From positions 186,001 to 250,000 of the IMG/VR virus record IMGVR_UViG_3300017991_005548: a stretch of 64,000 nt of DNA; one strand, 5' to 3'. Each line of letters starts with the position of its first letter. Positions within the stretch are counted from its first letter, which is position 1. The translations under genes and the position numbers were made by a program. The notes under the pieces were generated by a model. It saw only the letters and a program-made list of their open reading frames with translations, ran no database searches and was not told where the DNA came from. Positions 3,396 through 61,675 of the stretch are shown here, piece after piece.

Positions 3396-6300
3396 TTACC
3401 AAGCCCCTTCGATACCAACATTCTCTTCTTCAGATGGTGTTTGATTTTCAGATGGTGTTTGATTTTCAGATGGTGTTTGATTTTCAGATGGTGTTTGATT
3501 TTGAGGGGGAGGTTGCTGTTGTTGTGGGTTCCAATAGTGATCATTAAGATATTTTTCAACAATATTGACCGATCTTTCTAATGTTTCAATCGATCCTTGA
3601 TTAAATGTAGAAGGATCTTTGCCCAAATAACTCTTTAACACATTCATATGAGATTTAAAATTCCCACTTTCCCCTGCTGAAATCTTTTTTAAGTTAAAAA
3701 TATGTCGATTTCCCTGAGCTTGATTTCCCTGAGCTTGGGTCAATGTTTTTAATAAAGCAACATATTCTTTTAAATCGTTAAATGATTCTTGAGTTACTTC
3801 ATTTATACGATTTGGATCTCCCAATATATCAACAACTTGTTGGGCAGATTGTCTTCGTGCAATTAGCTCATTATTTCCAGCCATTTGATTAGATCGTTGC
3901 TGTTGTTGTTGTTTAAATTCATTTAATTTAGCAATCACACCATTTCTGAAGTAATCTAGATTATTCTGGAATTCCTGAGAATTTACATCACCAAATATGT
4001 TGAGATTTTCTTGTACGATAGCATCCCCAAGAGTAAAATCGTTAGTCATATAATCTATCGCATCATCTGCACTATAACGTGGCATTACTTTTATATCTGT
4101 CGTAAACTCATTAAAAGATCTCATTATTAAATGATCTAAATTCTCGTCAATTATTCGTATAGGTGGCTGTTCTTCAGCAGTCTGCTCTTCAGCAGTCTGC
4201 TCTTCAGCAGTTTCTGCACCTTCTGTCACAACAGTAGCTCCATTATTGATCGCGGTAAAATATGAAAATAGCTTCTGAATTTCATTAAGGTCAAGATTCT
4301 GATAGCTACCCATTTTCTTAATAAGATTCTGCAACTCTGTAGTCAATTCTACTGTCTGACCGTTTTCAGCGGCCTCAACAATTCTTCTAATGGCACTGGC
4401 CGTTTGTTGGTTTGTTAATTTTTCACTGAGTTTATTTAAATAAGAAAGGACATAGCTTGCCTGCTGTTGATCAACACTCATCGTTGGGTTCTCTTCCAAC
4501 GTTTCAAGTAGTCTTGTACAATTTGCTTGTTGAGCTAGGGTAACATTTTCTGAAAGAACTTCAGCAGGAATACCACTTTCTTCTGGTTCAGTCTCAGATT
4601 CTGGTTCAGGTTCTGTCTCAACTGACTCAGGAATAGTATCTAAGAATCTCAAAATAGCATCTGCTTGAGACTTGGTGATCTTTGTAAATTCCCCTCTTAT
4701 GAAATCATCTAACCCTGCTACAGTTGAATCAGGAGTGTCTACTGGAGTTGTGCCAGTTGATCCAGATTCTTCTCCTCCCTCAGGAGCGGTAGGAGCAGTA
4801 GGAGTTGTGCCAGTAGATTCATTTCCTCCTGTTCCAGGAGTTGTGCCAGTAATCTCAGGAGCCGCAATTTTCTCTAACATTTCATTTGAAGACGCAACAT
4901 TAGGCATTATTCTTGTACCAGTAGGAGTAGATATTTGTTCAGGAGCCGCAGTGCCTCCAGGCAATGCGACTGGCATATCTGCTCCATCAACAGGTTCCGC
5001 TATAGGTATCGGATTATCAATAGTGTGTTTGATTTGTCCAAGGATCTTCTTGCAAAGCTCAATATTGGCCGCATTCATTCCTGTAACATTTGCACGATTG
5101 TTTTCCAAATCTGTCAATGCCGCTCTTATAGATGTTTCATCTGAACCGATTAGTTGTGCGATGTAATTCATGGTATTCTGGTCAGATCCAGACTCTTCTT
5201 CAACTTCTTCAGTACCTTCGGTTTCTTCAGCGCCTTCAGCACCTTCGGTTTCTTCTCTTTCCCCGCCAAATGTTTCCGCAAAATTCTCTCCCATCAATTC
5301 TTTGGTAAAATTGGTATTGAGAATCTTCTGAGCACTTGCTAACATAGCGTCTGCTTGTTGTTTTAGCTCTTGGATCTTTAATTCATATTCTTCGCCACCA
5401 TCTCTTCCATGCCATTCTCCTTCAAGGATACCTGCATCTCTAACATATCTACCAAAGAAATCAACAAGATTTTCCCAAGATCGTTTCAACCAATCAAGGT
5501 CTTCTGTGAATTGTTGATCAACATCCTCTTTATGCCATTGTTCGCCCTTCTGTTCACCTGGATCAACCAGTTGATAACCTTCTGGGACACCCTGCTTCCC
5601 TGTCAAGTTATCCCATGCCCCTCTAAGACGATCTCCGAGGCCCTGTGCGGTTCGAACGAACACTCTCGACTCTTGATTCAACTTAGCATGTCTAAGCAGA
5701 ATATTAATCTCCTTAGCGTCATAATAGGCTTGAGGATTGTTGTCTCTTAGATTCTTAGCATATGAAATGAGTTTCTCAGGTAAAAGTCCATAACCTTCAA
5801 GATTGGAAGAAAGACGAATTATGTCTTTTATATAAGCACTAGAAGGGACGAGGCTCTGCATGCCACCCATATTGGCCATGTATGCTTCAGCACTATTTAA
5901 TGTTTGCTCATAAATTACCCGAGCGGCATCGGCATTCTGATTCAACTGTTGAGCATTATTTTGAATTTCTTCTGTCTGAGTCATCAAAGTATTAACAATA
6001 TTTTGGAAGATTACTCTGTGCTGTTCTGTCATCATCTGAGCTTGAGGATATCTTTTCATGAAATCTGTTAATGTTTGGTCAACATTCAATGAGAAATCAT
6101 TCAAGCCTGTTTGCATTTCTTCCAATGCGTTATAAATATCTGTATTTTCTTGAATTGCCGCATCAATTTCACTAGATGGATCTGGCAAATTGGGCTGTTG
6201 AGCTATTTTTTTAATTTTCATATTTTTGTTCGCCTTCTTCCACTTTAAATTCTTGTATCTTGGCGGCAACTTGGTTTTAGCCTTATATCTTGCCTTAAAC

Positions 6301-11394: not shown

Positions 11395-11469
11395 TGGTGC
11401 CCCTGCTGGGACTCGAACCCAGATTAGCAAGGTTAGAGCTTGCCGCTTTTGCCTTTAAGCTACAGAAGC
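11395..11469 (-). tRNA. Amber suppressor tRNA, anticodon CUA
   Basis: GCTTCTG TA GCTT AAAGGCAA AAGC G GCAAG CT-CTA-AC CTTGC TAAT CTGGG TTCGAGT CCCAG CAGGGGC A CCA: full cloverleaf with encoded CCA. Confidence 0.92.
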
Positions 11470-17030: not shown

Positions 17031-17616
17031 AGTCGCTTCATACGTTGAGGCATTAAATGTAGCCAATATGGATGGCGAGATAAAGAAACCAGAAGTGCTT
17101 GGAGTTTTGCAATCTCTTCCATCCCCAAATCACATCAAAAGATACTTATCAAATGAAGAAGCAAGAGTCTTGTTTGAAAGCATCCGATGGATTTGGAAAG
17201 AAACAAGTGGTAAAGATATTAGTGAGACATTTAATTTCGAGCCTGCTCCAGAATCATTGCTAGGAAATTACTGGATGCTAAGGAATGGTCTGATCTTTCA
17301 TGGTATCAACCATTATGGCATCATTAAAAGAAATATGACGCTCTTTTCTAACGTCCTGAAGTTAGAGCCGTTTGTACTGCATCAGAAGCTTGCAGGCATA
17401 CCACAAGACCTAATTAAGTACGTTATAGACAATGGGGGGATGAGAATCTTCGTTACGGCTGACAAAAGAGCATATTTCCAAATGAATGATCAGGTTTATG
17501 CCAATTGGGGTAGGGCCAAAGTTAAAGGACTGGACTTCGGAAACAAAGTGGTCAAACTTGTTGACCCCACTACCCGATTTGACGGTTGGAACTCTGGAAT
17601 TACCTTAAAACTCTAG
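17008..17616 (+). CDS. Hypothetical protein, 202 aa
   Basis: Coupled to cca; convergent stop overlaps the next gene (CTAG). Confidence 0.7.
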   Translation: MEDVTANEVASYVEALNVANMDGEIKKPEVLGVLQSLPSPNHIKRYLSNEEARVLFESIRWIWKETSGKDISETFNFEPAPESLLGNYWMLRNGLIFHGINHYGIIKRNMTLFSNVLKLEPFVLHQKLAGIPQDLIKYVIDNGGMRIFVTADKRAYFQMNDQVYANWGRAKVKGLDFGNKVVKLVDPTTRFDGWNSGITLKL

Positions 17617-19370
17617 TTCATAAAGAACGGGTCATCATCATCGTCGTCGTCATCAAATTCTACAGGTGGCAGATCTTCCTCAGGATGTTTTCTCTTAGGT
17701 GGCAATGGTTCGTCTTTCGTTGAAGGGCCAAACAATGATGCAAGTTCTGCTTCAAAATCTACATCATCCCATATCAACTCATCAAGATCTTCTTCTGCAC
17801 CAGGAGAAAGTGGGTCTGATGGATCAACTTCTGCACCATCGATAGCATCTCCAGTACCTTCATCAATGTCACCAGCATCTTTGTCTTCTTCATCTGTTTC
17901 GGTTTCCCAGAAACCAGTTTCATCCAACTGATCTTTGAATCGATTCAGAATTTCTTTCGCTTCTTCTTGATCACTAATAATATAACTTGATGCTTCGAAA
18001 AGCTCTTGTACTGGTCCAGCACCCATATATCCAACCAATCCTAATCCAACGATATCTTCTGGTTTACATTGCATGAATCTTCTGAAGTTCTCAGGACCAA
18101 TCTGCATTTGCATTTGCTCATTTACCAATTCATCTGATTCTTTTAGAATGGCAATCGCCTCTTCCATCTCCAAAGGACGTTGTCCTCTGCTTGCTCTAGA
18201 CTCATTGTCCAATTGGTGATCAGTTGCTTTTGAGAAAATACCCTTGGTAAGTTCCTGACAAATAATAATAAAGTTCATACCTTGAGCTACAGTGTTACCT
18301 TCATCATCATTATGACTCCAACCAGTTCCTTTTTGGCCTAACTGATCAGCCATCATCCTAACCATCTCTGGATCGATGTAATAAAAATGCTGACACATCA
18401 AATTAGAGAACTTTTCATAAAGTCCTAAGAGTTGAGGATTAATGTCATTGATCGCACCTTGGACTTCTTCCATCTCAGTTACATCAAATAATTCATTAAG
18501 TCCTGCGCCTTGAGCCAATGAATTCATGATGATGCGTTTGTTAATTTCACCTTCAAGTTCTGGAGTTATTTCAATATCTACTTCTGGGAAGTCTTCTTCA
18601 CCTGAAGGACCCATCTCTTCCATATATTTGATTTCTAACTCATCCCTATCAACATTCCATTTACGAGAGATAACGTCTTTTGCGAGGTCCATCAACTGCT
18701 CTTCATTTCCTTGTTCCAAAGCTTGGATTTCTCTAAGGAGTCCAAGAATCTGCATCATAACTTGTTGAATGTTAGTGTTTACAGGGATATCCTTCTCTTC
18801 TGCAATATTCGTAATATATTCATAGTTTGCGCGAGCTAGTTCATCACCATAATGAGAAAGCACTGGATTTTGAGAAAGGATATTGTTTTGAGGAATATCT
18901 TGCCAGAAATTTCTTACACCTCTTTGTACTGAGGCATCGTAATCAGCGGCGGCGACCTTCTGTTCAAGAAGACGGATTTCGTAACCACTTATCTTTTTTT
19001 TTAACTCCGAAGTAATGGTCGGCAAGTTATCAGGGGATACTTGTGCGGCCAATGGAAGATCTTCTTCTGGTTCTTCAGCTTTAGGTTTTGGTTGTACGAT
19101 AGGTTTAGGATTACGTGGTCTTCTTTTCCCAGGTTTTCCAGGCTTAGTCTTTTCTCCTGGTGTAGTTCTGGGTTTGGTTGTTGGAGCGGCTGGAGCAGGT
19201 CCTGATCTTTCGGTTGATGGAGCAGGTTCAGCTTCTCTTACCATATCTTCTGCTTGAACAACTAAATTGCCATCTTCGTCTAGCCATCCAGCTTTTTTAC
19301 CAAATTCTTCCCAATCTTTTTGAGACAATTTAACGGTCTTTTTGCCATTGGCGTTTTTTATAATTTTCAT
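17613..19370 (-). CDS. Leader-bearing protein, 585 aa (MKIIKNAN), Pro/Lys-rich linker, acidic tail
   Basis: Long ORF after an AGG-N19-GAA motif. Confidence 0.8.
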   Translation of the reverse strand: MKIIKNANGKKTVKLSQKDWEEFGKKAGWLDEDGNLVVQAEDMVREAEPAPSTERSGPAPAAPTTKPRTTPGEKTKPGKPGKRRPRNPKPIVQPKPKAEEPEEDLPLAAQVSPDNLPTITSELKKKISGYEIRLLEQKVAAADYDASVQRGVRNFWQDIPQNNILSQNPVLSHYGDELARANYEYITNIAEEKDIPVNTNIQQVMMQILGLLREIQALEQGNEEQLMDLAKDVISRKWNVDRDELEIKYMEEMGPSGEEDFPEVDIEITPELEGEINKRIIMNSLAQGAGLNELFDVTEMEEVQGAINDINPQLLGLYEKFSNLMCQHFYYIDPEMVRMMADQLGQKGTGWSHNDDEGNTVAQGMNFIIICQELTKGIFSKATDHQLDNESRASRGQRPLEMEEAIAILKESDELVNEQMQMQIGPENFRRFMQCKPEDIVGLGLVGYMGAGPVQELFEASSYIISDQEEAKEILNRFKDQLDETGFWETETDEEDKDAGDIDEGTGDAIDGAEVDPSDPLSPGAEEDLDELIWDDVDFEAELASLFGPSTKDEPLPPKRKHPEEDLPPVEFDDDDDDDDPFFMN

Positions 19371-37841: not shown

Positions 37842-40070
37842 TTACTCTTTTGGTGCTTGATTTTGAATAGCCATTTCCTTTTTCATAATTGTCTGCACAA
37901 TTTTACTCATTGCCTGCTGTGGCTGTTTCTCTATCTCACTATCTTTAAACCTTAAAACAGTCCAGCCCATCTGGGCAAGTTGCCTATCTCTTTCTTGGTC
38001 TTTTTGAATCTGTTTTGGAGAATTGTGAAAAATCTCTCCATCTGCTTCAATAATAAGTCTCAAATGAGGGAGGGCAAAGTCTACAGGATGTTCCATATTT
38101 CCTATCATAATCTTATACTGAGGGATAATAGGATATTTAATAATCCCGTCTTTTTGATGTTGAACCATATGATCCATCAATTCTCTTTCAATTTTTGTAA
38201 AAGCGATTCTCCCCTTCTCATCTCTTACCTGTCCATCTTTCCCTTGCGAATAGGAAGATGGTTTTGCGGTCTCTGAACGCATTTTCTTTTGCTCAGAAAC
38301 TAATTTATCTCTGGTTTTCTTTTTCAAAACCTTTCCGCCAAATTGTGATGGATCAGCAACTTCCGCAGTCAATGGCCCTGTTTTTGCCAATACGGGTTCT
38401 CCACCTGTTGGTGCGGCTGGCGCTCCACCGAGATCTCCTCCTGGCTCAATAGGGGGTTCTCCCCCCATACCTCCCATTCCACCTCCAAGATCCATGCCTC
38501 CTGGCATTCCGCCGAAGCCACCACCCATGTCTCCTCCAGGCTGTTGCCCCATACCTTGTCCAAGGGCCATCATTTGAACGGCATCATAGCGTTTTCTTTC
38601 AATTTCTTGATCTGGGTCAATATCAAATGCTTCAAGAACAGTCTGCGCACTAACAAGACCCTTCTCGTACAATTGAATAATAAATGTTCTGTATTGCTGT
38701 TGATCTCTAAGATGCATGGAGTTCCATTTAATCTTAGGAACCAGATACTCTTCTTCTCCCGTCTCAGGATTTGTATCAATAAACCCTTGTCGTTTAGCTT
38801 CTGGGAGATATAGGAAATCTGTTATCCAATCAGCTATTTGACTTCTAAATGTGTCCAACCTGTGAATCATAGCTTCAATACCAACAGAAGCGCTTGCAAA
38901 TGTTGGACCTTCACCATTAAGAAGAGCATTGTTAATCATCATACCATCAAGGACTTCCTGATTGATGAATTCAAACTCATTACTAAGAGTAAGAACTTTG
39001 CCAGAAGCACCCACCCAGTCAAAATCAAATGCATGGTGTGTGACAATGGTAAGGTTAGGGTCATTAGCAGTTTCGGCAAGCTGTGCTTGTACAGCGGCAA
39101 TATCGGCAGGTCCAGCAGGACGTTCATCACTACCGACTTTAACAATCTTAATAGGAACGATTAGACGTTCTGCAACGATCCACTGAGCTACCATGAGCTT
39201 AGTTTTATATGAAAGTATAGGGAATAATCTACGGACCATTCCGATTCCATAACGAGTATATCCACTTTCACCATATTTCAAGTGAGAAACGTTACGATTA
39301 TCTAATCGGATAGGCTGACCTGACGAAACAAGTGCGATTACATCTGGAGAAAGTTTCTCATATCCAGGTGTTTTTCTCTGGACCATATTGATGAGTTCTT
39401 CATCTGGTTTCAAAGCGATAATCGGGTCAGGATTTAAAGGTGGGGTATAGACATCTACAAAGTCAGGGTTAAGGATGACCATTCTTCTGACCGTTCCTCC
39501 CTCATGATCGCAAATAATATCTCCGACCATTCCAGAGCCTCCACAATGCTCACAATGGATTTCTGCAAATGGGAAGCAATCGCCAAGCAAATGGACTTCA
39601 TGACTTATCAAACGACACCATTTAGTCAGTTCGAGTCTTTTTTTGAATTTATCAAAGTATAACTTAATCTCTCTATCTTTACACTCATGTTCCCAATCAC
39701 TCATTGGAAAATAACTGTAGAAATCAATTGCAGAAGCTACCTTGGGTTCGTTTTCATAGAAGAATCTTGCCCATTGATATTGTTCTATTCTTTTACTTGG
39801 GATCTGCCAGTTGATTGGAGTATGAACTGGGGAGAAAAATTGAGGCTGACCATAAATAGTTCCTGCACTTGCTACGGAACTAAATTTCGCCATACCATTT
39901 CCCCATTGGGTACTGGCACCAGTCGTTGGGGCATAGTTTTGTCTTGGGATAGGTCGATATGATTGGTGCTGTGGAACCTCGCTGGTAGCGAGTTTAGCGG
40001 GATCTCTATTTCTTAATGCTCTAAAAGTCTCTTCTAGATTGGTAGTTTGTAGGTGAACTTGCATGCACAC
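37842..40070 (-). CDS. Portal protein fused to a C-terminal DUF559/Vsr-like endonuclease-fold domain
   Basis: VASAIDFYSYFP, LNPDFVDV, LYEKGLVSAQTVLEAFDID portal-like pattern; G/M/P linker; VDFALPHLRLIIEADGEIFH...RDRQLAQMGWTVLRF. Confidence 0.75.
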   Translation of the reverse strand: MCMQVHLQTTNLEETFRALRNRDPAKLATSEVPQHQSYRPIPRQNYAPTTGASTQWGNGMAKFSSVASAGTIYGQPQFFSPVHTPINWQIPSKRIEQYQWARFFYENEPKVASAIDFYSYFPMSDWEHECKDREIKLYFDKFKKRLELTKWCRLISHEVHLLGDCFPFAEIHCEHCGGSGMVGDIICDHEGGTVRRMVILNPDFVDVYTPPLNPDPIIALKPDEELINMVQRKTPGYEKLSPDVIALVSSGQPIRLDNRNVSHLKYGESGYTRYGIGMVRRLFPILSYKTKLMVAQWIVAERLIVPIKIVKVGSDERPAGPADIAAVQAQLAETANDPNLTIVTHHAFDFDWVGASGKVLTLSNEFEFINQEVLDGMMINNALLNGEGPTFASASVGIEAMIHRLDTFRSQIADWITDFLYLPEAKRQGFIDTNPETGEEEYLVPKIKWNSMHLRDQQQYRTFIIQLYEKGLVSAQTVLEAFDIDPDQEIERKRYDAVQMMALGQGMGQQPGGDMGGGFGGMPGGMDLGGGMGGMGGEPPIEPGGDLGGAPAAPTGGEPVLAKTGPLTAEVADPSQFGGKVLKKKTRDKLVSEQKKMRSETAKPSSYSQGKDGQVRDEKGRIAFTKIERELMDHMVQHQKDGIIKYPIIPQYKIMIGNMEHPVDFALPHLRLIIEADGEIFHNSPKQIQKDQERDRQLAQMGWTVLRFKDSEIEKQPQQAMSKIVQTIMKKEMAIQNQAPKE

Positions 40071-52036: not shown

Positions 52037-52867
52037 TTAGACTTCAATAAAGGCATCTCCAAGTTGATCTTCTTCATCAACTTCATCTGGAATGAAGGCA
52101 TTTTCCACATCTTCATCTACAGGTTCTTCTTCATCGATAAAAGCATCTTCTACATCATCTCCGAAGATTTCATCAACATCTAGGAAATTTGCATCTGGTC
52201 TATCACCGAAAGCATTGTTTTTCATTTCAACCTGGGTTGCCTTGCCATTGCCAGCGCCAATAACAGCGGTTGTTCCCATTCTTTCAGATGGATCTAACAA
52301 AGATTCATCGATGGGTGTTTCTTCCTCAACCTCTTCCCCTGCCTCTTCTGCATCAAGCTTTGCGGCGGCTTTCATGGATGCCTCACAACGAGGCTCATTT
52401 TCATCAATTTCCCCATTCATCTTGTGAACCATCTCTTGAGTCTTAGGCCCTACATCAGTCATTACAACCACTTTCTCTTTTGGTTTTTCTTCCTTTTCAG
52501 CCTTCTTTTCAGTTTTCTTGCTTTTGCTCTTGCCTCTTCTTGACTTAGGCTTCCTTTTGGGCTTCTCTTCTTCAGCCTTTTCTTCAGGCTTTTCTTCAGG
52601 CTTTTCTTGGGGAGGTTCAGTGGTCAGAATCTCTTCTACCTTTTCTGCTTCTTTAGGTTTTTCTTCGATCACTTCCATACGAATCAAACCATAGTTGGCA
52701 ACTTGTCTGAGTTCACTTGCTTGCGCTTCGTTTTCAACTTCGATATTTAAAGCGTAACTACATCCATCACATTTTTTAGGATTGGGGTCATATTTACCCC
52801 TAAGCATCATGCCAATAGTGTTGAAGGAAATTGTAGCTTCTGTCAAACCATATACGTTAACTTTCAT
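52037..52867 (-). CDS. Hypothetical protein, 276 aa, K/E-rich
   Basis: GGAG SD; TGTATAAT upstream. Confidence 0.75.
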   Translation of the reverse strand: MKVNVYGLTEATISFNTIGMMLRGKYDPNPKKCDGCSYALNIEVENEAQASELRQVANYGLIRMEVIEEKPKEAEKVEEILTTEPPQEKPEEKPEEKAEEEKPKRKPKSRRGKSKSKKTEKKAEKEEKPKEKVVVMTDVGPKTQEMVHKMNGEIDENEPRCEASMKAAAKLDAEEAGEEVEEETPIDESLLDPSERMGTTAVIGAGNGKATQVEMKNNAFGDRPDANFLDVDEIFGDDVEDAFIDEEEPVDEDVENAFIPDEVDEEDQLGDAFIEV

Positions 52868-52910
52868 AATAAAACTCCCAATTTAGTCTTGGTGTTGTTT
52901 ATTATACAAA

Positions 52911-54046
52911 TTAACCGAGCAGATCTAACCCTATGTTTTTGTCTTGCATAAAGGTGTTGATGTGTTTAAGGAAAAGAGCTTTCTCTTGTGGAGTAAAAAA
53001 TGCAGATGCAAGTAAACTACTCAACTCATCACTTGTCGCAGGGATATCATCCTCGTCAAACGATCTTTTGAATGAAACAAATGCTCGACTTACTTTCTGG
53101 TCATCTACTTTTTTTTTGTAGCTTCAACGATTTGACGGTTTTTGAAATAATTGGATGCAAAGAGTCTATCTTCCTCATCCATTAGATCTTCTTCGTCTAA
53201 GTCAGTTACTTCAAAATCCTCACCCACTTCGTCAAGACCGATTTGGTAAGTTACAATGCCCTGACTAAGTTTTGAATCATCAAATGAAGCTAATGAAAAT
53301 GGAATTTCGCCATGATGTTTGGACATGAAGTATTCCAAATCGTCAGCGATATCTTCCAAAGTCAAACTACTTGTATCGTTTGTACCAGTTATTTCAAGTT
53401 TACCAACAGCGGTAGGGGTTCCACCTATGTCAATCTCTTCGTAGTAGACTTCTTTAACAGCTTCTAGAACATCATCGTCGTCTCCGAGGTCTTCTATTGG
53501 AAAATCAGGATCGATTTCATTAATTTCAAAGTCCTGTCCATAAGGATCATCTAGGATATCATCCATATTGTCTTCAAGACTACGATCACGTTCCACATAA
53601 TCCCAATCAATATCCATTGACTGAGCTTTCTTCTCGAAAGCTATTTTAAGGCCATCTTCGCTTTTGATTTCCCACCATCTTTGTCGCTTGGGAGTTTCTG
53701 AGGCTGTCTCATACTCCTCTCCTTCGATATTGTAATCGGCCAATCGTTTCTCTTCAAGCTTATTCATATCACCTTCATAAGCTTGAGCATTTCTGTGTTT
53801 AGAACCAAATTCATCTTTGGCTTCATCTAGGTTTTTCTCAATAACAACTTCTGCACTACCAGTTCTGTTGTTTTCAAGAAGCTTTTCCATAACTGAATCT
53901 TTGTCACCTACGTGATGAGGATCTAACTGCTTATCTGTAATTTCCTCTGGAATGTCGCCATGGGATTCTGACAACATGCGATCAGTATGGGCATCTTCAT
54001 CTAATTTTTCATAGACTACAAATTTATATTCAGACATTTTATGCAC
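52911..54046 (-). CDS. Acidic head-module protein, 313 aa, with a predicted -1 frameshift extension of 65 aa
   Basis: ACA AAA AAA AAG TAG at 53105-53119; the -1 frame is open from 53108 to TAA at 52911. Confidence 0.7.
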
Positions 54047-55932: not shown

Positions 55933-56749
55933 AATATTCCTCCAATATATAAACACAACCATTGTCTGATGGACAAAAGGTCAGAATTTTATTTCCAACC
56001 TTATATATTTCAAACAAATGAGTCGCATCTCCTTCAGAGGAAAGCATATGCACAGTATTGTCACTTAAAAAGAAAAGTTTGTTCTTGACATAATATATGT
56101 CTTTTAGGTCTTTGCAGTCATCGATAATTGTGTACGTTGAGTTTTTTCGTATCCCCCTTAAGCAATTGTTACCACTGTCTGCAAAACAGACAGTTTTTCC
56201 CATTATTGCAACTCCAGTTGGTTTAGAAATCCTCGTATTTTTTAAATTTGATATTGAGAATCCAGCCTTACCACAACCTATAAGTGGAAAGGCGTTCTCC
56301 TCATTCATTATAAAGCATCTGTGACAATTTGTAGTGCTCCAGATGACTTGATTTTCTAATGAAGTTACATAAGTCCTTGAGTCGCTTCTTCCAAGGACTT
56401 TTCTTCTAAATTGTTTAGCACTGTTTTTTGAGATCAAATTCTCAAAATCCATCAACTCCAAATCGACTTTGTGAATTCGGCTACCACCTTCTGAAACTAT
56501 ATATAAACAATCATAACTGGAATTATAGCATATCGAACTGAAAGTTGAAAAGTCTGGCTTCTCAGTATATGTGAGTTCATAACGCCAATCAGGATTGCAG
56601 TCGCCATTATTCATCTTTCCTATGCCATCATCATGTAGGAAAAACAGATTATCCCCAACACAACAAAAATCCTTGATCTCGAAGTTGATCTCGAAATTTC
56701 GTTGTTTTCGGGTGGTAAGGTTCTTTTCTGTAAGTTTATAGATCATCAA
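55898..56749 (-). CDS. Beta-propeller (NHL-like) protein
   Basis: KPTGVAI...FADSGNNCLRGI. Confidence 0.6.
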   Translation of the reverse strand: MMIYKLTEKNLTTRKQRNFEINFEIKDFCCVGDNLFFLHDDGIGKMNNGDCNPDWRYELTYTEKPDFSTFSSICYNSSYDCLYIVSEGGSRIHKVDLELMDFENLISKNSAKQFRRKVLGRSDSRTYVTSLENQVIWSTTNCHRCFIMNEENAFPLIGCGKAGFSISNLKNTRISKPTGVAIMGKTVCFADSGNNCLRGIRKNSTYTIIDDCKDLKDIYYVKNKLFFLSDNTVHMLSSEGDATHLFEIYKVGNKILTFCPSDNGCVYILEEYYVESPEEAESY

Positions 56750-58103
56750 TGATTTCGAACTGATCTTCTACCATTCTACAAATGTGATTACCAAAGTTAA
56801 TATCAACTTCCAAATGATCACCAAATGGTATAACTTGGACAACATGTCCTGTTTGTTGATAATAGCTTTCCAAAGTTGGATCAGTGCAAACAACAATTGC
56901 GCCTTTTCCATTTTGGTAGTAATCCTGTTCAGAGTATTTTGATCCTGCTTCTTTCGTCATTGAAGATGGATTAACAAACCAAGCAGGTTTGTCTCCTTTA
57001 AAAGAAACAGTAAAAGTTGATGCCGCCTTAGATTCTTTATCTATTGTTTCGAAAGTAGGGCTTTCATAGGGAAAGTCTTTAGGTATGTCTGGTAAACTAC
57101 GTCCCTCTAAATGTAATACAGATGAATTGTCTCCTACACAGCAATGCCCTATCTTCTCCACAATTGGCTTCCAATATGCTTGATAGAACTCCAGGGAGTG
57201 ATATGGATACATATCCCTGATTTTGCCCCCAGGTCTTATGTCTTGCAAAAACAAATCTTTCCCAATATCTAATGCGATTACAATATCGTCACCATCAAAT
57301 AAATCAATACCATGGGAATGTTTTACCCATACTGCACTTGGATGATTATTTTCAACTGCTGAACAAGCACGTTTGCCATACTCATTCATCAACTCTTGGA
57401 TTGCATCAGCGTCGATGTCTCCCCAAGCATCTTGATAAGAAGTAAGAGATTGGGCTTGCTTTATTAAAGACTTAGATGAGGCCATCGGCATTTCCATTGG
57501 ATCGGCCATTGGCATCCCTCCCATCGGATCGGCCATCGGATCAGCCATTGGATCAGCCATTGGGACATCTTCCTCTTCTTCACTTTCTTTTTTGTCCTTG
57601 GCTAAATCCTCAGAATAATATTTGTGGACAAGTTCCTTTATTTTAGAAATAATTCCGTTCAGTCTTTCTTCGCTTTTTTCTTTATCTTCTTCTTCAGCGA
57701 GTTCATCTTCGTCCATGTTGTCTATCACAAACAAAATTTCACTAACAACAGCTTTTGCTTCGAAGTAATTTACTTTCTTCTGATTCTTATCCTCTTCATC
57801 CATGCCATCCGCCGTATCCACGAGACCATCATAAATTTCTTCATAATGATCTGCTAATCTCGTCTCTGCCGAAACATCTTCTACTAATGGCTTTTGCAAA
57901 TCCTCTATAGCGAATTTTTCTAAAGCGTCAATGTGATAAGAATGTTTCTCCGCAATTTGTTTGGCATCGCTATATGCTTCCCAGGCGTAACGATACAAAG
58001 GTTCTGAGAATTTTGTAAGGTTACTGTGATGGATGGATGAGAATTTGTTTATTGTAAAACAATATCTGTCTTTTATCTTGAAAACTTTAATGTGTTTGTT
58101 CAT
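56736..58103 (-). CDS. Hypothetical protein, 455 aa, with MADP repeats and KxA motifs
   Basis: First gene after an AGG-N19-GAA motif. Confidence 0.75.
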   Translation of the reverse strand: MNKHIKVFKIKDRYCFTINKFSSIHHSNLTKFSEPLYRYAWEAYSDAKQIAEKHSYHIDALEKFAIEDLQKPLVEDVSAETRLADHYEEIYDGLVDTADGMDEEDKNQKKVNYFEAKAVVSEILFVIDNMDEDELAEEEDKEKSEERLNGIISKIKELVHKYYSEDLAKDKKESEEEEDVPMADPMADPMADPMGGMPMADPMEMPMASSKSLIKQAQSLTSYQDAWGDIDADAIQELMNEYGKRACSAVENNHPSAVWVKHSHGIDLFDGDDIVIALDIGKDLFLQDIRPGGKIRDMYPYHSLEFYQAYWKPIVEKIGHCCVGDNSSVLHLEGRSLPDIPKDFPYESPTFETIDKESKAASTFTVSFKGDKPAWFVNPSSMTKEAGSKYSEQDYYQNGKGAIVVCTDPTLESYYQQTGHVVQVIPFGDHLEVDINFGNHICRMVEDQFEIIDDL

Positions 58104-58171: not shown

Positions 58172-61100
58172 TTACGAGTCTTTTTCGCTTAGCTTCTCAC
58201 GTATGGATACTCCAAGTGCTCCGCTTTCACAATGACCGCCTGAGCAAGCGTCTCCAGCCCCGCCACCATAATTGTCTAAATTGCCATATTCATCTTCATA
58301 ACATCCTGACCAGTCAACATCAATATATGTTCTAGTCAGATCTAACCACTTCTTCCAGTTCGCGACATCTTTAAGGCAATATGTCATTTTTCTAACATCA
58401 CCTTCAAAATAGCGATCTGCAAATTGTTTTGCCCTTCTGACCCAATCCAATTTTTCTTTGTAGTTTTCTACATTATGGTTAAGCCAAGCTTCAAGTAGTT
58501 TGTCTGGAGAGTCAGGGGACAATCCTTCGTTTTTCCACTTGATCCCATTTGTTTCAAAATCTCTGGAGATCTTATTTCTTAAAGGATCAACATAGATAAT
58601 CTCTCCAATGCCAAGCAAACAATCACAAGCTTCCCAAAGATTGTCTTTAAATACTCTCAATCCGTCAACAATAAGACCGCTGGCGAATAAACTGCCATCC
58701 CCATACTCTCTGACGATCTCTGTGATGGTCATAACTGCCGTAAAAGGCGCTTGAGGGTAATCTTTGTCCCCAGACATAGGTAACATAGAAATTCCCGCAT
58801 AATACCTTCTATTGCGATAAATGTGGTTAGCAACATCATCCCATTCATGTGGCTTGATGTTAATAGTGTTTGATACATTATGTCTTAGCCAAGGATAAAT
58901 AGCCGTATCATGTCTTGTCCCTGACTCAACCCAATTCTGTTGAGTAAGCTTAACATTCTCAAGAAGAGTTATGGCACCGACCTGATTTTTGGTTTTGGCT
59001 CCATCAGGAACTTCGCATAAGAAGGTAATAACAACATCAGTGTTATTATTTGACCATACTGATTCTTCGATAGCATCTGGGTTATGTTTTTCAAAATATT
59101 TCAGCGGAGTCTCAAGTTTGTTTGCTTGAACTCTCCTGAAATATCTTTTGGCATGATGAGGATGAATCCCAGATGCAGTTCCCAAAACACAACTCGTAGA
59201 TCCAGCAGGCTTAACACATGTAGCTCTTGCACATAAATTGATGCCAAGTATTCCTGCAATCTTCTCATTAGTTTTAAGAATAAGTTTAGCACCCTTCCTT
59301 TGTAATGCAGGATCAAAGGCCATATCAGGATTATCTGCCATACCTGTCATAGAAACACCGAGAAGTGCCTCAAGCTTTACGATTTCCTGAGTGATGTTGC
59401 CCAAATAATGAAAGGTATCATACGAAGCTTGAATAGTGCCAATGATTGCCGCCGCTTTACAAGAGTCAAGAAAATCCTCTTCGGTTTTAACCTTCTTTAC
59501 ATTGATCTCACATAAATTGCAAAATTGCCATCCGCTAAGATATTCATTATTGTCCTGAGCGATAACAGCAGAGGCAAATTCTTTGCGGAATTGATCATTC
59601 AAAGGGAGCTTTGGGACCATGCCGATTTCAACACAGTTATGTACATAAACTCCGTTTCCATCGAACGCATGAACAACGGGAACAGTACAATCATATACTT
59701 TTTCAATCCCCTTACTCTCTTTAGAGGCAACTGTAGCTATGAATTTACTCTTATTTGGTTTTCTTTTATATTGACTCAACAAACTATCAAGTTTTTGAAT
59801 TTTATATGGTTCTGAAAACCCGATCCTATTTCTATAAACCCAAATAGATTCATTTGAAATAACAAGTTCATGGGCCGTTTGGCAAAAATAATCTTTTTTA
59901 CCACCTTTTCCGTCAGGCATTGGTTTAAAACCCTCACCTCTACGGTTTTTATAAACTTTAGACACAATACCAAGGCGGAGGAGCATCCTTTGTACAGTTT
60001 TTAAATTGTTAAGAGAGATGCTGTGTAAACGTATTGACATCCCCTTCTTTAAATCGCCCTGGACAGATCCATCTGCATCAAAATACCCCTGAAGGAACCC
60101 TCTATACATATCTGAAGAACTTCCCTCTATTTTACACCCTATCTCCTTTTCACCACGTTTTATTCCGTAGTATTCTGCCATCTTTTTTAACCCAGAAGAA
60201 TATAACCTTAATTTACCGACATTTGACGTTTGTTTTCCTCCTGTCATTTCTTTATATGTATGAAGTCCTGACATTTTTATTCTTTTGATAGCCATCTTCA
60301 TCATATGAGACCTTGACTCTCCCCAATAGTCAAGCAATGCACTATTTTTAGTAAAGGTTCCGTCCCCAAGCAAACTGCCCAACAACCAACCTTTATCAAA
60401 GGTTTCATGAAACCCTTCTCCCTTCCATGTAAGATTTTGGTGATTATGTAAAACTATTTGATCTCCAACGTTTAGGTCTTTCAGTTCAACCCAACCCTCT
60501 GGAGTCATTATCTGGTGATTACTGGTCGCCTCTATGCAAAATCCCTCTTTAGTTTCTAAACCAAAAAGCTCTTTTTCCCCAGTTTCAAACATCCCCTTTT
60601 TTGTAGTAGGATATACTTGACCATCAACTATTGCTCCAAACTGTTTGCCCAAAAGATTTTTTGCTTTCTTCGGGCCATGATCTGTCATAACCCAAGTGTC
60701 ACCACTAACACATGGATTATAAACGATGTCATTACTTTCTGCCCAAACGAAGCCTGGTTCACCAAATTCTTTGTTCAATTCAATGAATTTCATGAACTGC
60801 TCTTTGGAGGTTTCGCTTCGCACTAAAATAACAGAATTATTTGATCTTCCTCTTTGAGGATTCTCTTTGCGCCAAGCGCCAGTTTTGGCTTTTGCCATCT
60901 CTTCGTCTTCAGGAGAGAATAAACAAATAGATGCACTGCGGCGAATTCCACCAGACAAAACAGCATCAGAGGAATGCATCATGATATCATAAGCATCAAT
61001 TGGCCTAAGACAGTCACCAAACTTACAACATCTATTAAGCAGAACATTGATATTATATAGTGATATTTTCAGTCCATCTGGTCCAGGGGCCTTGCTTCCT

Positions 61101-61675
61101 GAGGAAATTGGAGCACCTTCTGGTCGAATTTGGGAAAAATCGAAGATCACTTCATATCCTTGATATTCTGGGAAAGGAACGTCATCTCCAATAAAAAATG
61201 AAGATAACAAAACCCCGACAGAATCGGCCCATCCTTCGATGCTGTCTGGGATTACGAAAGTCTTAGTCCCTTTAGTCGGGTTGGCTATGCCAGGAAGCTT
61301 CGCGACATGGTGGGTTTGAACTGAAAATCCGATTCCACAACCACAAAGTAAAAGGAACATACCTTCTTGAAAAAATCTTGGTCTGTCACAATACGAGACC
61401 GTACAATTGTATAACTTCTCATGCTTGTCTAGAATTGGTTTCCCCCCAAACTGCAATGCCCTTTGAGATCCAAGAACCCTTTTTCTTCGAACCATTCGTT
61501 CTGCGAAATCCATTTCTTCTTTTAATTGCTCACAAATCTCTGGCCCAAGCTTCTTTCGATGCATGTCAAATACTCTAGTGACTTGTTCTTCCCAAGTCTC
61601 TCGTCTTTTCATCTCAGGTAGGTATTTGGCATACTTCGAAAAACGTGTATATTCTTGAAGTGCTCTGACGGACAT
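58172..61675 (-). CDS. nrdJ: Class II (B12-dependent) ribonucleotide reductase with intein
   Basis: GSQRALQFGG, YNCT, GGIRRSA, split active site NP|CVE, TCVKPAGSTS. Confidence 0.88.
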   Translation of the reverse strand: MSVRALQEYTRFSKYAKYLPEMKRRETWEEQVTRVFDMHRKKLGPEICEQLKEEMDFAERMVRRKRVLGSQRALQFGGKPILDKHEKLYNCTVSYCDRPRFFQEGMFLLLCGCGIGFSVQTHHVAKLPGIANPTKGTKTFVIPDSIEGWADSVGVLLSSFFIGDDVPFPEYQGYEVIFDFSQIRPEGAPISSGSKAPGPDGLKISLYNINVLLNRCCKFGDCLRPIDAYDIMMHSSDAVLSGGIRRSASICLFSPEDEEMAKAKTGAWRKENPQRGRSNNSVILVRSETSKEQFMKFIELNKEFGEPGFVWAESNDIVYNPCVSGDTWVMTDHGPKKAKNLLGKQFGAIVDGQVYPTTKKGMFETGEKELFGLETKEGFCIEATSNHQIMTPEGWVELKDLNVGDQIVLHNHQNLTWKGEGFHETFDKGWLLGSLLGDGTFTKNSALLDYWGESRSHMMKMAIKRIKMSGLHTYKEMTGGKQTSNVGKLRLYSSGLKKMAEYYGIKRGEKEIGCKIEGSSSDMYRGFLQGYFDADGSVQGDLKKGMSIRLHSISLNNLKTVQRMLLRLGIVSKVYKNRRGEGFKPMPDGKGGKKDYFCQTAHELVISNESIWVYRNRIGFSEPYKIQKLDSLLSQYKRKPNKSKFIATVASKESKGIEKVYDCTVPVVHAFDGNGVYVHNCVEIGMVPKLPLNDQFRKEFASAVIAQDNNEYLSGWQFCNLCEINVKKVKTEEDFLDSCKAAAIIGTIQASYDTFHYLGNITQEIVKLEALLGVSMTGMADNPDMAFDPALQRKGAKLILKTNEKIAGILGINLCARATCVKPAGSTSCVLGTASGIHPHHAKRYFRRVQANKLETPLKYFEKHNPDAIEESVWSNNNTDVVITFLCEVPDGAKTKNQVGAITLLENVKLTQQNWVESGTRHDTAIYPWLRHNVSNTINIKPHEWDDVANHIYRNRRYYAGISMLPMSGDKDYPQAPFTAVMTITEIVREYGDGSLFASGLIVDGLRVFKDNLWEACDCLLGIGEIIYVDPLRNKISRDFETNGIKWKNEGLSPDSPDKLLEAWLNHNVENYKEKLDWVRRAKQFADRYFEGDVRKMTYCLKDVANWKKWLDLTRTYIDVDWSGCYEDEYGNLDNYGGGAGDACSGGHCESGALGVSIREKLSEKDS
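59636..60712 (-). mobile_element. Intein with LAGLIDADG homing endonuclease, 359 aa
   Basis: Starts CVSGDT, ends VHN before Cys+1; blocks LLGSLLGDG and LQGYFDADGS. Confidence 0.92.

Follow-up and report, generated by a model that had tools for sequence, protein, structure and literature searches.

The analysed stretch of DNA (the window, 64,000 nucleotides) represents positions 186001-250000 of a 296-kb IMG/VR virus record, IMGVR_UViG_3300017991_005548, which was cut from a 524-kb metagenome contig. The record belongs to an uncultivated huge phage with 46 tRNA genes. On the minus strand of the window, directly after the gene of the large terminase (TerL), lies an ORF encoding a 310-aa acidic protein, or 313 aa if the upstream GTG is used as the start. 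The ATG start is preceded by a GGAGAG motif and matches an identical database protein (P0002). The ORF ends ACA AAA AAA AAG TAG, and the -1 frame continues beyond the run of nine A's for 65 codons, reading ...KKKVDDQKVSRAF...LDLLG. The features of the locus and other features noted in the window are listed in Table 1.

Table 1. Features of the window; positions are those of the 64,000-nucleotide stretch
Feature	Position	Strand	Description
Main ORF	53105..54037	-	310 aa from ATG 54037 (313 aa from GTG 54046); conserved N-domain (about residues 1-135), acidic linker modelled with low confidence, small alpha/beta C-domain (about 190-270); ends ...EATKKK; short isoform
A9 tract	53109..53117	-	Proposed slippage site (T9 on the plus strand); (AC)A AAA AAA AA(G) in the zero frame, followed by G at 53108
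Zero-frame stop	53105..53107	-	TAG, one base after the run
Extension	52914..53108	-	65 codons in the -1 frame (VDDQK...LDLLG); C-terminal domain of the long isoform (about 375 aa); predicted three-helix bundle
Stop of the extension frame	52911..52913	-	TAA
Upstream stop of the -1 frame	53124..53126	-	TGA, 2 codons upstream of the run
Next gene	52867..52037
Antisense ORF	52933-53121	+	62-codon ATG ORF antisense to the extension, probably spurious
Portal protein gene	37842..40070	-	PHROG 16240; C-terminal endonuclease-like domain (DUF559 / MTES_1575, residues about 660-730)
455-aa protein gene	56736-58103	-	Two genes upstream of TerL; weak hit to a tubulin domain (Pfam Tubulin_3, E 0.004, below the cut-off)
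Ribonucleotide reductase gene	58172-61675	-	1167 aa, interrupted by an intein with a LAGLIDADG homing-endonuclease domain (Pfam Intein_splicing and LAGLIDADG_3)
tRNA gene	11395-11469	-	CUA anticodon, labelled tRNA-Pyl by ARAGORN
Other A9 run	18994-19002	-	T9 on the plus strand; GAG TTA AAA AAA AAG ATA
ORF with the other A9 run	17613..19370	-	585-aa protein of unknown function

Organization of the locus
The original prediction of an A9 run that opens a -1 extension without a start codon was confirmed, with one small correction. The TGA in the -1 frame had been placed 5 codons before the A run, but it lies 2 codons before the first A of the run, which is 5 codons before the first extension-specific codon GTA. 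The extension frame can therefore be entered only within the run. The extension fills the 194-nt gap before the next gene, in which no other minus-strand ORF is present. Runs of this length are rare in the genome; only two A/T runs of 9 or more were found in the 296-kb record, against about 11 expected from a rough estimate based on base composition.

The upstream gene was identified as TerL (PHROG 2, E 5e-28). Downstream lie a 276-aa protein of unknown function and a trypsin-like protease (Pfam Trypsin_2, 4e-23), and further along the same strand lie the portal gene, which carries an unusual fusion to an endonuclease-like domain, and a 1856-aa protein with a prohead-protease domain. With X denoting the gene studied here and the other names giving protein lengths, the order g455 - g283 - TerL - X - g276 - protease - g167 - g115 is kept in most related loci whose flanks reach far enough. 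The 455-aa protein could possibly be PhuZ-like.

Conservation of the interrupted arrangement
A word search found 31 homologs, nearly all of which end in KKK or KKN, and DNA was obtained for 62 related places in viral and metagenome contigs (loci, numbered L001 onwards; database proteins are numbered P0001 onwards). Among 27 distinct sequences with an A run just upstream of the extension, 24 have A9 and 3 have A10. The extension lies in the -1 frame in 26 of these, at 35-55% protein identity, and in 25 the run starts at the third position of a codon. The zero-frame stop (TAG in 19, TAA in 8) lies 0-1 nt after the run in 23. A profile search of 1.8 billion cluster representatives gave 255 clusters at E up to 0.001. 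Of 124 proteins with both the N and C domains, 90 end exactly in KKK or KKN, 110 have KK(K) within the last eight residues, and only 2 carry the extension in frame. Gene callers end almost every member of the family at the stop after KKK, so that the C-terminal domain of at least 255 protein clusters is missing from the databases.

The gene was not found in GenBank phage records by either megablast or tblastn. The nearest TerL there is 25% identical (LR745208, an unannotated 485-kb uncultured phage), and its neighbourhood has no homolog and no long A run.

The extension as part of the protein
An HMM of the extension, with seeds taken by coordinates from the loci, hit the -1 frame of 44 loci with E-values down to 1e-31. 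The aligned extensions, which stay open for 60-74 codons, show the conserved pattern xDxxKVxKAFxSFxxKFDxxNLxxANxELxxLLxxAxFxxxEKxxFxxxVRKxLxxxxIxLDxL. For the pairs close enough to measure, dN/dS is about 0.07-0.2 although dS is saturated, and differences are concentrated at third codon positions (e.g., 9, 5 and 23 at positions 1, 2 and 3 for L012 against L047), indicating purifying selection. The same substitution pattern indicates that the minus-strand frame, and not the antisense ORF, is under selection. In seven distinct distant loci (L042, L054, L055, L057, L059, L061, and L062) the domain is fused in frame to the C-domain with no A run, and two database proteins (P0015 and P0017) also carry it in frame; in P0017 the tract is A7, two bases shorter than usual. 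The few continuous orthologs (L042, L054-L062, P0015, P0017) show that the extension is a real C-terminal domain of this protein. AlphaFold2 with 34 sequences predicted a three-helix bundle (pLDDT 83.6).

No ATG, GTG or TTG lies in the extension frame between its upstream stop and its twelfth codon in any of 26 loci, and in the relatives this frame opens only 3-57 nt before the run. The first codon of the extension is GTA, CTA, TTA or ATA.

Sequence features of the run and its flanks
The codon before the lysine codons always ends in A, although it encodes S, T, V, A, I or E; under the codon usage of each gene this has a probability of about 1e-15.5. Both lysine codons are always AAA (about 1e-10.7). 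The run-length counts in family genes are A5 251, A6 77, A7 29, A8 5, A9 40, and A10 3, whereas in 153 kb of flanks they decay smoothly (509, 154, 52, 13, 2, and 0). The base after the run is G in 10 loci, T in 10, C in 5, and A in 2. An SD-like 4-mer at -22..-4 occurs in 1 of 26 loci, against a background of 24%. No conserved RNA structure flanks the site (mean z -0.05 upstream, and -0.22 over 27 loci for the 70 nt downstream), although pseudoknots were not modelled. The phage encodes tRNA-Lys(CUU) beside two tRNA-Lys(UUU).

The amber-suppressor-type tRNA with a CUA anticodon could allow stage-specific read-through of TAG. However, read-through at this site would add only 4 zero-frame codons before a TAA. 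Long frames under code 11 already cover 95% of the genome, and treating TAG as sense adds less than treating TGA or TAA as sense. In a homolog, L014 (IMGVR_UViG_3300035698_021830, about 3901-3906), an in-frame TAG sits in the acidic linker between the N and C domains, both of which are in the same frame; this may be read-through or reassignment of TAG in that phage, or a split gene.

A second A9 site and the distribution of the tracts
Another A9 hot spot lies at the end of the conserved N-domain (site 1) in at least 13 distinct loci. It is in frame in ten or more (L004, L010, L011, L025, L030, L036, L041, L042, L043, L060, and L065), and a -1 shift is needed in L061, L051/L052, and L028/L039. 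These runs occur in all three codon phases. For the in-frame runs, stops lie 0-11 codons away in the other frames, with the exception of one frame of L065, which stays open for 20. The gene in the window lacks this second site and reads GAG AAG AAA GCT there.

On a tree of the N-domain (46 sequences), the shift-requiring A9 at the junction of the C-domain and the extension occurs in every major clade, whereas the in-frame A9 at the N-domain boundary is scattered; for example, L004 has it and its sister L040 does not. Other lineages reach the same set of products in different ways. Some encode the N-domain as a separate gene (L054-L062), some fuse all parts (L042), and one lacks the extension altogether (L036). 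Distant family members (P0138, P0142, P0147, P0149, P0154, and P0161-P0164) carry three or four tandem copies of the N-domain in proteins of 377-764 aa, and the N-domain therefore also occurs as a repeat module.

Predicted structure and searches for function
The 310-aa protein is very acidic (88 D+E, i.e., 28%, against 33 K+R). AlphaFold2 was confident only for the alpha/beta domain at residues 190-270, and the body and the extension were folded separately. The ESM Atlas model was poor (pLDDT 0.35). Pfam, PHROGs and NCBIfam gave no match for the protein, the extension or the natural fusion P0015, and PDB profile searches found nothing below E = 0.05. Fold searches gave only generic small alpha/beta folds (Z up to 5.8) or no helical-bundle match. 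The function is unknown. The fixed position between TerL and a trypsin-like protease gene, within a block that holds portal and protease genes, and the scaffold-like, acidic, poorly modelled body suggest a role in head assembly or as an internal head protein, and the extension may be a binding module present on only a fraction of molecules, but this is inference only.

Discussion
The original prediction inferred two isoforms of a head-module protein encoded next to TerL, and left open whether ribosomal frameshifting of the E. coli dnaX type or transcriptional slippage is responsible. The two-isoform inference is strongly supported by comparison, and it is very likely that some programmed recoding operates at the A9 run. 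Standard decoding would stop at TAG and give the 310-aa protein, while a fraction of the product would carry the 65-residue extension with the junction ...ATKKK/VDDQK. No RNA or protein data exist for the site. Both candidate mechanisms give the same protein, so the mechanism is inferred from what selection preserves. Transcriptional slippage is favoured, with a probability of about 0.6. In this model, the nascent RNA realigns on the T9 template within the roughly 9-bp RNA-DNA hybrid and the polymerase adds one extra A, and the resulting A10 mRNAs are then read normally into the extension. It was reported that runs of 9 A or T give efficient slippage by bacterial RNA polymerase (PMC5009743), and that transcription insertions are mostly single A or T bases and rise exponentially with run length (PMC5574713). 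One inserted A gives exactly the -1 frame seen in every shift-requiring site. The transcribing polymerase is, however, unknown; no RNAP gene was found in the 296-kb record, although the rest of the 524-kb parent contig was not searched.

Ribosomal -1 frameshifting, in which two tRNA-Lys slip back on the in-phase heptamer A AAA AAG, would yield the same protein and cannot be excluded, although it seems less likely; it may also act together with polymerase slippage. Every A9 tract contains an in-phase A AAA AAN heptamer, the shift is always -1, and A_AAA_AAG is the most shift-prone heptamer in E. coli (PMC5009743). Moreover, the stop directly after the run in 23 of 27 loci resembles a 'shifty stop', but this is also explained by the conserved (L/V/I)-(D/N/E) start of the extension, which is read from NTA GAN or NTA AAN. 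On the other hand, only 10 of 27 sites end in G, and the other bases are much less shifty in E. coli (PMC5009743). Selection keeps nine A's, two or three more than the heptamer needs, no SD-like element or conserved downstream structure is present, and the second hot spot occurs in all three phases. A phage tRNA-Lys(CUU) would be expected to remove the basis of AAG shiftiness, although the tRNA set of the host is unknown. Ribosome sliding on poly(A) is weak at A9 and A10 and robust only from A11 (PMC4363877).

The remaining explanations are all improbable. Homopolymers do mutate by slipped-strand mispairing, and the in-frame fusions P0017 and P0015 (the latter of unknown tract length) could be taken to indicate DNA-level phase variation between A9 and A10 genomes. 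However, consensus assemblies are almost always in the interrupted state, whereas many would be in frame if both states were common, and a structural protein needed in two forms within one infected cell is poorly served by rare genomic variants. An assembly error that collapsed A10 to A9 could be judged only by comparison, since the three public DNA runs that contain the region are available only as contigs, none of which spans 52866-53231. Twenty-six independent, diverged sequences nevertheless share the interruption, and in five loci (L004, L010, L011, L025, and L030) an in-frame A9 and the out-of-frame A9 lie in the same gene, so that a systematic loss of one A cannot explain both. Decay of a formerly fused gene is opposed by the purifying selection on the extension. 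A separate small gene, translated by its own initiation or by termination-reinitiation, is also very unlikely. The ATG that follows the TAG is in the zero frame and opens only a 4-codon ORF, the extension has no start codon in any of 26 loci, and in distant relatives it is fused to the C-domain.

The arrangement can be compared with several known systems. Thermus thermophilus dnaX, in which tau/gamma are made by transcriptional slippage, likewise has a run of exactly nine A/T bases, no other cis element, and two isoforms that share an N-terminal body and differ by a C-terminal domain. In the window the polarity is reversed, as standard decoding gives the short form and the proposed slippage the long one, and the protein is an uncharacterised phage protein, not a clamp-loader subunit. 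Variants with an in-frame A9 (L065 site 1, L028 site 2) reproduce the dnaX layout, apart from the frame of L065 noted above. E. coli dnaX shares the heptamer, its phase and the -1 direction with the window, but it has an upstream SD and a downstream stem-loop, and its frameshift truncates the protein whereas here it extends it. In Shigella spa13 and other type III secretion genes, and in IS-element transposases, slippage on an A/T run gives a C-terminally extended fusion product as a fixed fraction of the output (25-30% for spa13; PMC5009743). These are bacterial or mobile-element genes, and some IS cases need a nascent RNA hairpin, which was not seen here. The tail assembly chaperone G/GT (lambda and many dsDNA phages), T7 capsid 10A/10B, and the major head protein of Lactobacillus phage A2 are phage morphogenesis genes that also make a short and a C-terminally extended form in a set ratio. 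Those cases are ribosomal, use short heptamers and sit in tail-chaperone or major-capsid genes, whereas this gene follows TerL, does not lie between tail tube and tape measure genes, shows no similarity to them, and uses an A9 tract.

Recoding of this kind is already known. No report of this family, or of slippage at A9 in a phage virion-module gene, was found in the literature searched. The same tract sits at two junctions, in three codon phases and in both polarities, beside lineages with a fused gene or two separate genes, and this contrast separates what the polymerase needs (nine A's) from what a ribosome would need (a phased heptamer). It is about as likely as not that A9 tracts act in this clade as a movable domain-boundary switch, tuned to the length of the RNA-DNA hybrid and placed repeatedly at either of two junctions of one morphogenesis protein, so that one gene yields fixed proportions of N-only, N-C and N-C-EXT isoforms. 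This would possibly be the first case of programmed transcriptional slippage in a dsDNA phage virion-module gene. If confirmed, it would also show that annotation of huge-phage genomes should test A/T runs of 9 for hidden extensions.

The only other A/T run of 9 or more in the 296-kb genome is in the same phase but in frame, about 123 codons into the 585-aa protein. The -1 frame stops about 10 codons later, so slippage there would give a truncated product of about 135 aa. A search of viral contigs for relatives of this protein found only the same phage.
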